Assembly (NCBI GenBank): GCA_965112735.1 | Contig: OZ218950.1 | Coordinates: forward strand, 992,001-1,056,000 | Direction: 5' to 3' | Length of the DNA: 64,000 nucleotides | Source: Phaeosaccion multiseriatum | Taxonomy: Eukaryota; Protista; Ochrophyta, other classes | Part shown: positions 13,679-19,500 of the stretch, in pieces | Numbering within the stretch: position 1 is the first letter of the stretch | How the letters are laid out: the number at the start of each line of letters is the position of its first letter | Program-made: the position numbers and the translations under genes | The notes under the pieces: generated by a model | Told to the model about the DNA's origin: nothing | The model's input: only the letters and a program-made list of their open reading frames with translations | Database searches by the model: none

Positions 13679-16600
13679 ATGACATCCCGGGACGTGTTGG
13701 TGTCGCTGTTTAATTGCACGGGAGGAGCTCGATGGAACAAGCACAGCGGATGGGACGAATTGGGCACCATTACACCGGGCAATCATCGACATCATTTGTA
13801 TGGGGTGAATAAGAAGGGGAGGGAGGGAGTGGGGGGGTGCTATTTAGAAAATGTTACAAGCGTAGTCGAGCTCTATCTACAATGGAATGGACTAGAAGGT
13901 GAGAGACGTGCTTGTCCTTCACGGTCCTGGCTGATGGGAGTCTAAAGAGACTGCTGCTGCCCTTGTCCACACACAGGCACGATACCGGCCGAGCTTGGCG
14001 GATTACAAGCACTGACGACGCTTTTCCTTAATTGCAACGAGTTGACAGGTGGGTTACAGGCATGATGCCATTCACACCTCGTCCCTTCTCCTCGCGTGTT
14101 CACAGTGCTGAGGGGCTTTTGGTGACGTGTTGCTGCTGCCCTTGTCCGCACACAGGCACGATACCGGCCGAGCTTGGCCGATTACAAGCACTGACGGAGC
14201 TTAGCCTTGGTGGCAACAAGTTGACAGGTGGGTTTTTACATGCATGATGCCATTCACACCTTGTCCCTTCTCCTCGCGTGTTCACAGTCCTGAGGGGCTT
14301 TTTAAGACGTGTTGCTGCTGCCTTTGTCCACACACAGGGACGATACCGGCCGAGCTTGGCCGATTACGAGCACTGACGGAGCTTCACCTTAATAACAACA
14401 AGTTGACAGGTGGGTTACAGGCATGATGCCATCCACACCTCGTCCCTTCTCCTCGCGTGTTCACAGTCCTGAGGGGCTTTTTTAAAGTCGTGTTGCTGCT
14501 GCCCTTGTCCACACACAGGCACGATACCGGCCGAGCTTGGCCGATTACAAGCACTGACGGTGCTTCGCCTTGATGGCAACGAGTTGACAGGTGGGTTACA
14601 GGCATGATGCCATCCACACCTCGTCCCTTCTCCTCGCGTGTTCACAGTGCTGAGGGGCTTTTTAAGACGTGTTGCTGCTGCCCTTGTCCACACACAGGCA
14701 CGATACCGGCCGAGCTTGGCGGATTACAAGCACTGACGGTGCTTTGCCTTTTTGACAACAAGTTGACAGGTGGGTTACAGGCATGATGCCATCCACACCT
14801 CGTCCCTTCTCCTCGTGTGTCCACAGTCCTGAGGGGCTTTTTATGACGTGTTGCTGCTGCCCTTGTCCACACACAGGCACGATACCGGCCGAGCTTGGCG
14901 GATTACAAGCACTGAGGTGGCTTCACCTCGGTGACAACAAGTTGACAGGTGGGTTTTTACAGGCATGATGCCATCCACACCTCGTCCCTTCTCCTCGCGT
15001 GTTCACAGTGCGGGGGGGCTTCTTAAGACGTGTTGCTGCTGCCCTTGTCCACACACAGGCACGATACCGGCCGAGCTTGGCGGATTACAAGCACTGACGG
15101 TGCTTAATTTCTATGGGAACGAGTTGACAGGTGGGTTTTAACAGGCATGATGCCATCCACACCTCGTCCCTTCTCCTCCCGTGCTCACGCACGGTAAGCC
15201 CTTCCAGATGGTCCGAAGCCTCCTCTCAGCGGTTTTGCTTGCTTGAATGACTCGTCTCTTGCTCCATACTCCATGGGATTCGACTGTACTTCGCGGTTAA
15301 GCAAACCACGAGTGACCTCCCGAGGAGAGGAGACCCCGCTCTGTCCTGCCTTGCTGCGTAGTAGGTGTAGCATTGGTTGGCGTGACTGACTCTCTCTGAC
15401 GCGCCGATCTCTCTTCTATGCGCGGTCCGCAGGCAACCCCGGTAGGCTACAAGACCGGGACAAAGTGCAGATTTGGCAGCGAGAGCTTCCGCTGACGACC
15501 GAGAGAGATATAGCCCGCTACGAGCTGCAGACTGAAAGGGCCTCCTTCATCACGCTCAAGGCCGAGCTTGAGCAGGCCAGACGAGACACAGAGTCTCTGC
15601 TGGAGGAGGCACAAAGAGCGTCGCTGTCCTCCGGGGTGGGCATGCTGCTGGCCGTTACGGACGCTGTAGCGAGCACCAGAGGCCCCAAGCAGAAGGAGCA
15701 CAGCTCTGAGGTGCAAGAGCAGCATCAGAGAGAAGGTGTTGAGGAAAGGGCCCAACTTCCAACAGCCTCCTGGAGGGGTCTACTCAAGGCGATTGAGCTC
15801 ATGTCCAAAGGCAAAGCGACGCAGGACAATGGCACAATCGGGACAGAGGCTCTGGCTGAGATGGTGCAGGAGGAAAGGCGGGCAAGCGGGCACTGGGACT
15901 CTCTCAAGATGCATCAGAACATACTGAGGGAGTGGAGCCCGCCTGTGTCGGGGGAGGCTCGGGCGGAAGAGGTTAGCATTGGTGAGATCGAGGCGGTGTT
16001 GGTTGACAACAATGGGTTTACGGGGGCGAGCTTGCATGAGGTCGTGGCTGCTCGAGACGGGGAGAGGAAAAACCTGGTGGACGCGATGAGCCAGCTCCTT
16101 CTGATGAGTGCGAGAGAGGAGCTTCCCGACAAGATCGACGCCGAGAAGAGAGAGATCGAGAGTGTAGAGGGTCTGCTGGCACCGCTGAAAGAGTTCCAAC
16201 TGTCATTTAGGGACCTACTTGAGGAGGGCGGAGGGCAGGGCGAAGACGAAAGCTTCGACATTGGAGCGCTGTGGGGGCAGGACGTTGACGAAAGCTTCGA
16301 CATTGGTGCGCTGTGCACAGAGGCGCTGCAAGCTGTGAGCCAGTGGGAGGCAGCGCACGATCTCGCTGCCCTCGCGCAGGGCACTGACGGGTGCTGCAGA
16401 GAGCTAGGGCAGGCGCTGGCGAAAGCGCTTGGGTCGCTGGGAGGCACAAGCCCCGGAGTCGAGGAGGGAGCAGGAGCTGTGGGAGAGAGCGAGGAGGACG
16501 ATGGCGACGTACGGCGATGCCTTCGACTGGCGGCCGAGGCGCAGGCGGCAGTCAACGACGAAGAGAGCGGCAGCGAACTAAGCTCCTTGCTCAAAGACCT

Positions 16601-17907
16601 TCCGCTCGTCGCCGTCCTGCAGGCTGGGGAGCGCCTGCTCGCGTACCACCAACAGAGGGTGGAGACCATGGAGGGACTGGGCGCCAGACGAGGCATCTTC
16701 CTCGACGTGCTCGCTCAGCAGCAGGGGGTAAGCATCGCCTTCCACCACACCTTTGCACTCTCGTCACTCTCTCTATGTCTTTATCTCCGCTCGAAGATAC
16801 TCAGCACAGAGGAGCGAAAGTGCTCCACGAAGTGTGTGGCTCTGACAGAGTCCATTGTGCCGCTCGACGCCTCCTTTCTTTGGAGACTTGACCTGCTCTT
16901 CTGACACGTCCTGTGCCCTCCAGGTGGTGTCCAGCGCGTGCTACCCTCCCGACAACAGCGGACTGAAGGCCCTCCGCGGAGACCTGCACGACCTTCAGGA
17001 CGAGATGGAAATACTGAAGACCCGAATCCCCCAGAAGCAGCGCCGGGGAGAGCCCACCGACGGCCTGCAGGCAGAGCTGAGCCGCGTCATCTCCGACATT
17101 AGTCGGAAGGTAGGGCGAGTGTTGTATGGGGTTGGCTTACGAGTAGTGGGTCCGCAGGGGAGCTCTCGATCCTCCCCTCCTCTTGGGCACGCAGTGTCAC
17201 GCGACTGACGTCTCTCCTCTCCCGTTGGTTGTGCGGCTGTGCTCCTCTGCCCAAGTAGAAGCTAAGCCGGCACATCATGGCGGAGGAGAGCAAGCTGTAC
17301 CGCCTGGCGCAGGAGCACTTCCCCGAGCTGCTGCTGGAGGGCAACGAGTGGGGCAAGGAGGTGGGCATTGACGCCTCCTCCTTTGGGGCAGAGGCGCGGC
17401 GCCTGGGCCTGCTGGCAGATGGCCGGACGCTGCAGAGCTTCGCCAAGCATACGCTGCTCTCCACGCAGGCGGGAAGGCGTGTCTACCTCGTGGAGGAGGC
17501 AGGGGAGTCCATGGCAGAGCAGCAGCAGGACGGTGTGCCTCTCCGGCGGAAAATGGTGGTTAAAGAGTTCAGCTTGAAGCTGGAACGGGACATGCGGCAC
17601 TTCTACAGACAGGTGCGTCTGGCCTGTCCCTCTCACGCATAGCCGTAAGTTGCTGACAAGTGAGCCCAAACGCACGCACTCACGTCAGAGCCTGCTCTCC
17701 CCTCCTCCTCACCTCCCGCCCTCCGTGACCAACAGGTTGCCCTGCTGCACCAGCTGAGGCATCCCAATCTCGTGGGCGTGTGTGCTGTGTTCCAGGACGT
17801 CACGGCGGGCTCTTGCTACCTGCAGATGCCGCACTATGGGGGAGGAGATGTCCGAGCCTGGATGGACGCCAACCCCGCCACGGCCAGGGATGCCGTCTTC
17901 TGCGCGC

Positions 17908-17954
<47 letters not shown>

Positions 17955-19500
17955 CAGAGGGTGGACTGAGCGGAGAACAGAGTCAAACACCCCGCCCAAA
18001 CGTTCTATCCAGTTCTACCTTTCCACTGAGCATCTCTTCGCTTCCGTCCGCCGTCCGCGCCTCGCAGATTCTGAGCGACGTGTTGGCCGGGCTGCACCAC
18101 CTTCACGCAAACGGCCTCGTGCACTGCGACCTCAAGCCCTCCAACGTGCTGCTCACCACGCGAGGCACCGCCGTGCTGTCGGACTTTGACGGGCTACGCA
18201 AGGGGGACAACTTGGCCAGCGGCATGGGATCGACCACTTTTGTAGGAGGCATCCAGGGAACTATGGGCTACCTCCCTCCAGAGCTGCTGCAATCGCCAGG
18301 CACGAGTGTGATGAAAAACCTCATCACTCCAAGCGTCGACATGTTCGCTTTCGGGAGGGTTGCGGAGGAGCTGCTACAAGAAGGGGTGCAGCTCAGTTGG
18401 CGAAGAGGGGAGGGAGGCGACAGGAAGGCAGAGCACCGCAGGAGATGGGACTCGCTCAAAGGCTTGATCACTGCACTGGTGGCTGATGACCCGGCCAAGA
18501 GGATGAGCAGCTCGGACGCGCTGGCCCACCCTCTCTTGGTGGAGCTCGGTAGGAGGACCGCGGAGGGAGAGGACAGGGTGAAGCAGCGCAAGCTCCAGTG
18601 CGGCGTCTGCTTTGACACATTCCTCGCTGCGGAGGGGGTGCAATGCGGCGCGGAGCACTTCATCTGTGACGAGTGCCTGGAAGGGTACGTGACGGCCAAG
18701 AGCGAGTCTGAAGAGAGGAAGGCGCTGTACAAGGGCGGGCTGCAGTGCCCCCAGCCTGGCTGCGCATCAAGTCCCTTCCAAGGACACACCATTGCCAGCC
18801 ACGTGTCCGCCTCCGTGTATGAGGCATATCGCACGGCGCTCAACGCGGGGCTGGAGACCAAGGTTGTGCAAGGCATGGAGAGGGTTCACGAGGTGAGGAT
18901 GAAGGTGGCTGGGGGTGAGGATGATGATGGATGGAGATCGTTTGGTGTGTTGCTAGATGCCGTTCTTATGGGCCATTCATGTGGACTGTGTGGCGACTGT
19001 GTGTGGCTTGTCTTCACCGTTGCTGCCTCTCCTCTCGCTATTTGCGTCCCCTCGTTGTGCAGGAGAGGCTGGAGGCGATGCGCAGAGACTTTGCCAATCG
19101 ATCGGCGGCCGACGCCCTCGAGGAGGAGGCCCGTCAGCACTCGCTCCGTGTCATCGAAACGGTCATCAACCTGGCCTGCCCACGCTGCAAGCAGGCCTTC
19201 GTGGACTTCACCGGTTGCTTCGCCCTCACGTGCGGCCGCTGTTCTGCGGCCTTTTGTGCCTACTGCCTCGCGGACTGCGGCAGCGACGCTCACGCACACG
19301 TGGCATCATGTGCTCTGAAACGAACTGGAGGTTTATACGCCAGCGTCGACGACGTCGAGGCCGCCCAAAAGGGCAGGAGGGAGAAGCTGCTGGCGGCCTA
19401 CCTGCAGCCTCTGCGGGCAGAAGTGCGCGTCAGGGTGGTGGAGCTGCTCCAGCCACACGTGAAGGACCTGGGTCTCTCCATCGGACGGCCAGGAAACTGA
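13679..19500 (+). CDS. LRR - helical/coiled-coil - protein kinase - RING/Rcat (RBR-like E3 ligase) protein, copy 2, complete (~1331 aa)
   Basis: ATG 13679. N-cap exon 13679-13898 (MTSRDVLVSLFNCTGGARWNKHSGW...VVELYLQWNGLEG). Seven 72-nt LRR exons 13977-14048, 14156-14227, 14338-14409, 14519-14590, 14698-14769, 14877-14948, 15059-15130. Then 15433-16727, 16924-17109, 17259-17612, 17736-17909, 18068-18892, 19063-19500 (TGA). Summed length 3996 nt, open frame. No signal peptide or obvious TM helix. Confidence 0.92.
13950..15188 (+). repeat. Tandem array of seven ~179-182 bp LRR exon+intron cassettes
   Basis: Same unit as 1-994; last intron truncated at ~15188. Confidence 0.97.

Follow-up and report, generated by a model that had tools for sequence, protein, structure and literature searches.

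We analyzed a 64,000-nt stretch of the genome of the ochrophyte Phaeosaccion multiseriatum (contig OZ218950.1 of NCBI GenBank assembly GCA_965112735.1, positions 992,001 to 1,056,000 of the forward strand), hereafter called the window. The gene under study, termed gene B, lies at positions 13679-19500 of the window on the + strand. The results suggested that gene B probably encodes, on one chain, a leucine-rich repeat (LRR) array, a kinase, and a ubiquitin ligase derived from the RING-between-RING (RBR) type without an IBR domain, in which the ligase would be switched on by a ligand. What appears to be new is the fusion of an IBR-less, RBR-derived ligase to a kinase, here together with a diversifying LRR array.

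The window was recognized as eukaryotic DNA, with 55-62% G+C and short GT-AG introns. The model of gene B consists of 14 exons, all with GT-AG borders, that total 3996 nt and encode 1331 residues from the ATG at 13679 to the TGA at 19498-19500. The protein is composed of an N-cap, seven LRRs, a spacer of ~500 residues, a Ser/Thr kinase, RING1, a linker, an Rcat-like domain, and a helical tail, in this order. This model reproduced the spliced protein of 1331 residues given in a preliminary description of this DNA, and every element listed there (N-cap and LRRs, kinase, RING1, IBR-less linker, and Rcat-like domain) was found in its place. The absence of a signal peptide and transmembrane segment was likewise borne out by hydropathy, as the highest 19-residue Kyte-Doolittle mean was 1.42 and the N-terminus was not hydrophobic. 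A tandem copy of the gene, termed paralogue A, is located at 1-5534 on the + strand and was used for comparison. The features of gene B are as follows.

13679-13898 (+): exon 1, ATG and LRR N-cap (residues 1-73), ending in phase 1; defined by splice sites and an in-frame stop upstream of the ATG
13977-14048, 14156-14227, 14338-14409, 14519-14590, 14698-14769, 14877-14948, and 15059-15130 (+): seven 72-nt LRR exons, all in phase 1; defined by Tandem Repeats Finder (TRF) and exon borders
15131-15432 (+): intron 8 (302 nt), between the LRR array and exon 9; the longest intron
15433-16727 (+): exon 9, spacer residues 242-673, with no recognized fold (no Pfam family at E<=1)
16924-17109 (+): exon 10, spacer residues 674-735 (ratio of nonsynonymous to synonymous substitution rates, dN/dS, 0.08 versus paralogue A)
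17259-17612 (+): exon 11, HFPELL helix (17316-17336) and kinase N-lobe with beta3 Lys837 (MVVKEF, 17553-17570); supported by the family alignment
17736-17909 (+): exon 12, continuation of alphaC and hinge; alphaC spans the border from exon 11 (HFYRQ, continued by VALLHQLRHPNLV)
18068-18892 (+): exon 13, kinase C-lobe (HCDLKPSN, 18122-18145; DFD, 18179-18193; PPE, 18266-18283), RING1 (C1089-C1143, 18599-18763), and first half of the linker helix; Pkinase and zf-RING_14 matches
19063-19500 (+): exon 14, remainder of the linker helix, zinc domain of the Rcat type (19177-19311) with Cys1238 at the catalytic position (19216-19218) and Ala1240 at +2 (19222-19224), two-helix tail, and stop; IBR_1 match and CUL9 Rcat alignment

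An intron within exon 1, which would account for an odd insert in the N-cap, was considered and rejected because no GT-AG pair kept the frame. In the spacer (residues 242 to ~754), Leu, Glu, and Ala made up 35% of the composition, and neither a Pfam family at E<=1 nor an informative ESM Atlas neighbour was found. Exon 9 contains a 42-nt segment duplicated in tandem and in frame (16233-16315), which encodes (E/V)DESFDIGAL(W/C) twice in an acidic part of the spacer and is present in both paralogues. The donor GT of intron 12 is also the first unit of a (GT)21 microsatellite (17910-17951), and sequencing-run contigs break there (17899-17963).

Ligase module and kinase

Three zinc domains, RING1, IBR, and RING2 (Rcat), are the defining feature of RBR ligases: RING1 binds ubiquitin-charged E2 (E2~Ub), ubiquitin moves to a cysteine of RING2 and then to the substrate, and the IBR forms part of an allosteric ubiquitin site. 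RING1 of gene B shows the pattern C1089-x2-C-x11-C-x3-H-x2-C-x2-C-x28-C-x4-C1143, a C3HC4 ligand set of the RBR type that begins with C1089GVC, continues through C-GAE-H-FI-C-DE-C, and ends with C1138PQPGC1143. The following linker (residues 1144-1224) contains no Cys in its 81 residues, and the spacing was alike in 49 relatives described below; the reported absence of an IBR was thus confirmed. The Rcat-like domain reads C1225PRC-x9-C1238-FALT-C-x2-C-x4-C-x2-C-x8-H-x-H-x3-C1269. The Pfam matches of the single sequence, zf-RING_14 at 5e-4 and IBR_1 at 1e-4, were both sub-threshold, and support for the RBR ancestry of the module from a single sequence was therefore weak. In an alignment with the Rcat of CUL9 (E 0.033), Cys1238 fell on the active-site Cys of GC(L)HMTC, and the residue at +2 was Ala1240, which agreed with the earlier reading that the catalytic Cys is kept and the His at +2 is replaced by Ala. 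By analogy to the ligand pattern of the HHARI Rcat, Cys1238 would not be expected to coordinate zinc.

The family alignment and profile gave a clearer signal. Among 42 aligned sequences, Cys1238 (C52 in exon-14 numbering), three other Cys, one His, and the last Cys were invariant. Ala1240 (A54) was at least 90% conserved; as almost every relative carries it, the Ala at +2 is a family trait. The consensus of the family Rcat is CPRCxxAFVDFxGCFALxCxxCxCxFCAWCLxDCGxDAHxHVxxC, followed by a tail of ~55 residues. When the PDB was searched with the family profile, the best 28 sequences were all RBR ligases, with E-values of 2e-4 for parkin RING1, 3e-4 for CUL9 Rcat, and 9e-4 for RNF216 RING1.

The best single piece of evidence for the identity of the Rcat, stronger than structure alone, is the sequence match to a protein termed P0163, which carries CCCH and RRM domains, RING1, a Pfam IBR above the gathering score (926-981), and then an Rcat of the same subtype. 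The Rcat and tail of gene B were 43% identical to those of P0163 over 115 residues (E 1e-30). From this match it follows that the zinc domain of gene B occupies the place of RING2 in a canonical RBR, that the His-less GCFAL active site is probably older than the loss of the IBR, and that the form linked to the kinase probably dropped the IBR as a secondary event.

Structural models were obtained by AlphaFold for the module of a homologue from Tribonema minus (P0015, KAG5191561.1), which aligns with the gene B module without gaps, and for exon 14 of gene B itself. The Tribonema model (predicted local distance difference test, pLDDT, 93.4) consisted of RING1, a single uninterrupted helix of 63 residues (93-155), Rcat, and two helices, and the exon 14 model was predicted with a pLDDT of 92.3. 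In VIA-align, RING1 and the helix of the Tribonema model were superposed on RNF216 residues 512-601 with Z 9.4 and a root-mean-square deviation of 2.5 A over 90 residues (parkin RING1, Z ~7.5), and its helix, Rcat, and tail on RNF216 residues 652-771 with Z 5.7. The AlphaFold check named in the preliminary description thus yielded confident models with a helix in place of the IBR and an Rcat-like domain.

The kinase domain, also claimed there, was recovered by Pfam (Pkinase, E 2.8e-19) together with its catalytic residues. VVK837, HCD932LKPSN937, D951FD, and a PPE variant of APE were present, and the Lys, Asp, Asn, and Asp were conserved in relatives in the family alignment. A family-specific HFPELL helix precedes the domain. 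The closest solved kinases were CaMKII and IRE1, at only ~1e-11. The domain is a divergent kinase of the Ser/Thr type and is probably active.

Kinase-ligase family, LRR array, and tandem paralogue

Relatives were collected as a set of 152 proteins, namely the best 150 matches of an exhaustive protein search with exon 13 as the query and two cluster members. The closest relatives of exon 13 were 36-41% identical in this search, and 49 of the 152 proteins combined the kinase, RING1, a linker of ~70 residues, and Rcat. Word-based searches yielded few matches. Named sources of the family are Chromera velia (Cvel_6266, Cvel_13004, Cvel_588, and Cvel_17561), Tribonema minus, Polykrikos, Paulinella, Sphaeroforma arctica (XP_014152813), Pigoraptor, Thecamonas trahens, and Hondaea fermentalgiana; public records label these relatives merely as protein kinases. 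Their N-terminal domains vary among ankyrin repeats (ANK), ANK with LRRs, LRRs, Sel1, RanBP1, ubiquitin-like with ANK, PAH with ANK, and none recognized. Besides gene B, LRRs were found in P0047/P0153, P0161 of Thecamonas, and P0003. By this sampling of sequences, the kinase-RING1-helix-Rcat core defines a family that is found widely among eukaryotic supergroups and whose N-terminal domain is interchangeable. The full module (hidden Markov model E 1e-54 to 1e-73) was also located at the C-terminus of UPF1-like (AAA_11/AAA_12) helicase proteins P0157, P0158, P0162, and P0166, one of which is from Ectocarpus fasciculatus; in P0158, a PARP-like domain follows the module. The Pfam families PF26600 and PF26601 are precomputed on relatives of the UPF1-helicase type.

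No description of the kinase-ligase family was found in the literature on RBR/Rcat-kinase combinations, kinomes, IBR loss, RNF216, and LRR exon shuffling, nor was a curated family found that covers the combination, for which Pfam yielded only sub-threshold RING and IBR matches. The earlier statement that this combination is not recognized as a named family therefore stands as far as papers and curated families are concerned; however, the fusion is not unique to this gene, since its core spans many protists.

LRR- and ANK-kinase-RING1-Rcat members were also observed as intronless open reading frames (ORFs; L001:4001-7528 and L005:5001-8222) on dense metagenome contigs of 144-464 kb. Genes on these contigs overlap by 4 nt, most are ORFans, and the neighbours include a nonribosomal peptide synthetase of 5343 residues, a LIM-domain gene, and a PI31-like gene; candidate origins are bacterial or giant-virus-like. 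The G+C content of the family gene on L001 was 0.63, compared with 0.50-0.57 in its flanks.

In the LRR array, each 72-nt exon encodes one 24-residue repeat, GTIPAELGxLQALTxLxLxxNxLT, and the exon and intron together form a unit of 179-180 nt arranged in tandem. TRF reported a period of 179 with 6.8 copies and 91% matches, and the borders are conserved, with cacacag before and gtgggt after the exon. In the 12 LRR exons of the window, codons 15, 17, 19, and 20 varied at 12/12 nucleotide sites, compared with 9/60 elsewhere (Fisher p=2e-8). The diversity was 0.47 in these four codons, 0.04 in the rest of the exon, and 0.06 in the aligned introns, and nonsynonymous codon differences outnumbered synonymous ones by 312 to 51. 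The variation was confined to the exposed positions of xLxLxx.

Paralogue A, which is cut by the window start, is composed as follows.

68-862 (+): LRR exons
974-994 (+): truncated LRR unit
1053-1202 (+): C-cap exon
1462-5534 (+): exons 9-14

The two paralogues showed 91-97% amino acid identity in tblastn and 95.4% DNA identity over 4.5 kb in blastn. Their exons were 2.3% divergent with no indels, whereas the introns were 7.9% divergent with indels, i.e., the exons were ~3.4 times more conserved. All exons were open in A, all zinc ligands and catalytic residues were kept, and dN/dS was 0.40 overall; exon 13 gave ~0.9, a value from 8 differences only. The divergence pattern and the overall dN/dS therefore indicated that the exon model is under purifying selection, and by these measures the gene B locus is an intact, selectively constrained coding sequence. 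The 150-nt exon of A at 1053-1202 encodes the last, divergent LRR and the C-cap (…CFTPGNPDLH); it contains no stop and has a consensus phase-1 donor. Alignment of A and B showed that this exon is deleted in gene B, where its last five bases (15189-15193) and a GTAAGC donor remain inside intron 8. The region 974-1045 of A contains 21-22 nt from the start of an LRR exon and then a poly-C tract, which resembles a recombination scar at the end of a tandem array; the 21-nt piece would keep the frame if spliced in.

Between the paralogues (6000-12000), the + strand shows a G-over-C skew of 0.33-0.42 over ~6 kb, and a minus-strand ORF at 8973-10709 in this region has a DUF445 match and a coiled-coil segment. 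The other neighbours are ordinary and show no evident connection with gene B: an ORF for a WD40 beta-propeller at 30738-32600 (-) and ORFs with ataxin-2 signatures (SM-ATX, LsmAD, and PAM2) at 48192-51920 (-).

Proposed mechanism and alternative explanations

In the mechanism we propose, a ligand would be bound by the LRR face, which varies at four exposed positions in each repeat. Binding would alter the conformation or oligomeric state via the spacer and thereby switch on the kinase, and the kinase would activate its own ligase module, for which PINK1 with parkin and the phosphorylated Ser719 of RNF216 are precedents. RING1 would then recruit E2~Ub, and ubiquitin would form a thioester with Cys1238 before its transfer to the substrate. 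Such a thioester mechanism at Cys1238 would be expected because RING1, the helix before Rcat, and the Cys are all retained, with two helices joined into one where the IBR is missing. Since the canonical allosteric site was lost with the IBR, the module would depend on another switch, most obviously the fused kinase. Without the His at +2, a different residue may act as the base, e.g., the nearly invariant spare His of DAHxH; one of the two conserved His of this motif is probably dispensable for zinc binding and could take over this role. Of all steps of the proposal, the sensing of pathogens is the weakest, although it is plausible.

Several observations weigh against this reading or limit it. 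The IBR with its allosteric site and the His at +2 are missing, so that catalysis by the module is putative. If straight, the ~63-residue helix would set RING1 and Rcat ~9 nm apart, an estimate from the secondary structure of the model only; transfer would therefore need bending of the helix or would proceed in trans within a dimer or oligomer, and trans transfer would in turn make the ligase activity dependent on ligand-induced assembly via the LRRs and spacer. The Tribonema homologue is only 30% and 45% identical to the two halves of the gene B module. In Foldseek, the first 43 rows for exon 14 were all RBR ligase chains, mostly RING2/Rcat constructs, at E >= 0.13, and all E-values of both module models were >0.01. 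In a wide search for exon 14 independent of Foldseek, generic helical matches dominated and RNF216 (Z 5.8) was tied among them. As these structural matches are weak and tied, structure alone is no proof of the identity of the Rcat. The kinase has a degenerate Gly-rich loop without GxGxxG, and the position of the alphaC Glu is occupied by Gln852 (encoded in exon 11) in the subclade of gene B, compared with Glu in other members; its activity is therefore uncertain. At the N-terminus, exon 1 scored weakly on coding potential, and the LRR domain of gene B may be compromised because the terminal LRR/C-cap exon was lost. The contigs of four sequencing runs from one sample over 13620-19600 represent DNA, as they cover the introns and contain no splice joints. 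Finally, only the hypervariability of the LRR face and the copy number point to immunity. The structural part of the preliminary description is upheld, but its NLR-analogous receptor role should be read more cautiously.

The alternative that survives best, though we hold it unlikely, accepts the architecture as described and takes the protein for an ordinary signalling enzyme, acting in stress, the cell cycle, or protein quality control, with the LRRs serving as a scaffold and not as a pathogen receptor. It would suit an ancient core found in free-living protists with ANK, RanBP1, ubiquitin-like, or Sel1 N-termini, the ordinary neighbours (WD40, ataxin-2-like, and DUF445), and the absence of an NTPase switch and a death-type domain in Pfam searches. 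However, LRR variation at exposed xLxLxx positions only, the tandem duplication of the gene, and the fusion of the same module to UPF1-like helicases and a PARP-like domain argue against it; such partners are common in conflict systems.

It is rather improbable that the protein is the product of one gene in which the C-terminal zinc domain is non-catalytic, leaving a plain RING ligase or a kinase only, with the Rcat-like domain as a leftover structural or binding zinc finger. The Ala at +2, the missing IBR with its allosteric ubiquitin site, and the long helix, which if rigid would hold RING1 and Rcat far apart in cis, all speak for it. Yet Cys1238, which by analogy to HHARI would not bind zinc, is invariant in 42/42 aligned sequences from several supergroups, and the protein still has the helix before Rcat that in RBRs binds donor ubiquitin. 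Moreover, HOIL-1 is active without the His at +2, and a canonical RING1-IBR-Rcat protein has an Rcat of this subtype.

A poorer candidate still is a pair of genes at the locus, an LRR-only gene (13679 to ~15141) and a separate spacer-kinase-ligase gene with its own promoter and possibly a small first exon in intron 8. Translation past the end of the last LRR exon meets a stop after two codons and could give an LRR protein of 243 residues, intron 8 is the longest and formally holds phase-1 ATG-to-GT mini-exons, some family members (P0026 and P0144) have no recognized N-terminal domain, and the run contigs show no splice joints. The start of exon 9 is hard to reconcile with such a gene pair: its frame has a stop at 15387, in intron 8, and the first ATG only at 15642. 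Measured against off-frame codon usage, the 69 codons between the acceptor at 15433 and this ATG scored +28 bits, and measured against non-coding usage they scored +19 bits, with the other two frames at approximately -30; non-coding control regions reached at most ~+3 bits and were below -20 bits, respectively. Exon 9 thus codes before any ATG, with an in-frame stop just upstream, and an upstream exon is therefore required. The exon 9 acceptor is in phase 1, the phase of all LRR exons, and the C-cap exon of paralogue A is free of stops with a consensus donor. Candidates for an alternative first exon in intron 8 were enumerated, and none was convincing; the sole longer mini-exon had a GTT donor, compared with GTR in 13/13 donors of gene B, and its frame was broken in paralogue A. 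Furthermore, LRRs, the kinase, and the same ligase module occur as a single ORF in P0153/P0047 (an intronless ORF of 1175 residues on metagenome contigs of up to 464 kb), P0003 (ANK and LRRs), and P0161 (Thecamonas trahens). On this evidence, the LRR exons and the kinase-ligase exons probably form one transcript. The claim of a single chain with LRRs, a kinase, and an RBR-like ligase thus remains the most likely reading on account of the coding signal, intron phase, and single-ORF homologues.

Least probable is that gene B is a recently rearranged, decaying duplicate without its own function: the terminal LRR/C-cap exon of A is missing in B and exon 13 shows a dN/dS of ~0.9, though from just 8 differences, whereas 14/14 exons are open, no splice site is lost, exon conservation and the overall dN/dS indicate constraint, and the zinc ligands and catalytic residues are all intact.

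The proposal can also be extended. RING1, a single helix, and Rcat might constitute a distinct, ancient class of thioester E3 that, after the loss of the IBR, works only in trans in a dimer or oligomer, is switched by its own kinase in the manner of PINK1 and parkin on one chain, and is here coupled to a diversifying LRR array as an intracellular immune receptor that ubiquitinates the bound target or signals by assembly; we regard this extended version as a long shot.

If the preferred reading of an LRR-coupled kinase with an IBR-less, RBR-derived ligase is correct, the family would reveal what an RBR ligase can do without and would offer a natural test of RING1-to-Rcat transfer in trans. That the ligase is permanently joined to a kinase suggests an intrinsic control by phosphorylation, and the arrangement might serve as a simple model for the coupling of kinases to RBRs as in PINK1/parkin. 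Ubiquitin ligation would also be an added effector type for the brown-algal candidate receptors with one LRR per exon, which have so far been tied only to GTPase and kinase domains. These implications, all of which are read from sequence, concern both ubiquitin biochemistry and protist immunity.

Comparison with known systems

Judged by its domains, the gene B protein is not a canonical RBR, NLR, ROCO, or plant-type receptor kinase. Among RBRs, the nearest is RNF216/TRIAD3, with which it shares an RBR-type RING1 followed by a helix, the order of helix, Rcat, and C-terminal helix, and a Cys at the catalytic position. Unlike RBRs, gene B has no IBR, carries Ala in place of the His at +2, and is fused to a kinase, and its similarity to solved RBRs is marginal (E ~1e-4). 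The helix before RING2/Rcat binds donor ubiquitin in RBRs (PMC9834252), and their catalytic triad is Cys-His-Glu (PMC3940038). The Cys-His(+2)-Glu/Gln triad is absent from gene B, and it is not universal among RBRs. HOIL-1 (RBCK1) has Trp462 at +2 instead of His and may recruit a C-terminal His (PMC9834252). Thus, gene B and HOIL-1 are alike in an Rcat without the His at +2, which is not obligatory; the loss of this His noted in the preliminary description is real, but as a departure it is not unprecedented. An IBR and a binuclear zinc cluster set HOIL-1 apart from gene B, and no close sequence relationship was found between them.

The CCCH-RRM-RING1-IBR-Rcat proteins P0163 and P0164, from sequencing-run and metagenome contigs, have the same subtype of Rcat and tail (GCFAL, DCGxDAHAH). 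They differ from gene B in keeping a Pfam-significant IBR and RNA-binding N-termini and in having no kinase, and the RING1 domains are not detectably close (E 0.09).

As in the PINK1-parkin system, a Ser/Thr kinase is paired with an RBR-type ligase. PINK1 switches on autoinhibited parkin, and activation by the kinase would be the counterpart in gene B. Unlike that system, the kinase and ligase of gene B would form one chain, and the kinase is not PINK1-like. Plant U-box kinases also combine a kinase and an E3 on one chain, but the U-box does not form a thioester. Plant LRR receptor-like kinases carry LRRs and a kinase on one chain and are transmembrane proteins with extracellular LRRs. Plant-type receptors of this kind need a signal peptide and a transmembrane helix between the LRRs and kinase, neither of which is present in the gene B protein. 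In contrast to NLR/STAND receptors, gene B has no NACHT/NB-ARC P-loop NTPase, as no Pfam family was found in the spacer.

The LRR array has its closest counterpart in Ectocarpus, in which LRR-ROCO genes and five "type I" LRR-kinases use the same type of 72-nt LRR exon with the motif GxxPxxLxxxxxLxxLxLxxNxLx (PMC3341825). LRR-kinases built from type I exons were earlier proposed as candidate receptors in that alga, without mention of RING or ubiquitin (Zambounis et al. 2012, PMC3341825). Unlike LRR-ROCO proteins, gene B has no ROC-COR GTPase, since no such Pfam match was obtained in any exon at E<=1. Like the Ectocarpus LRR-ROCO genes and LRR-kinases (PMC3341825; PMC11378527), gene B has one LRR per 72-nt exon, tandem units of exon and intron, and cytosolic LRRs. 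Positions 15 and 19 of the Ectocarpus type I exons are among those reported to be positively selected (PMC3341825), and gene B likewise varies at positions 15 and 19 of the repeat.

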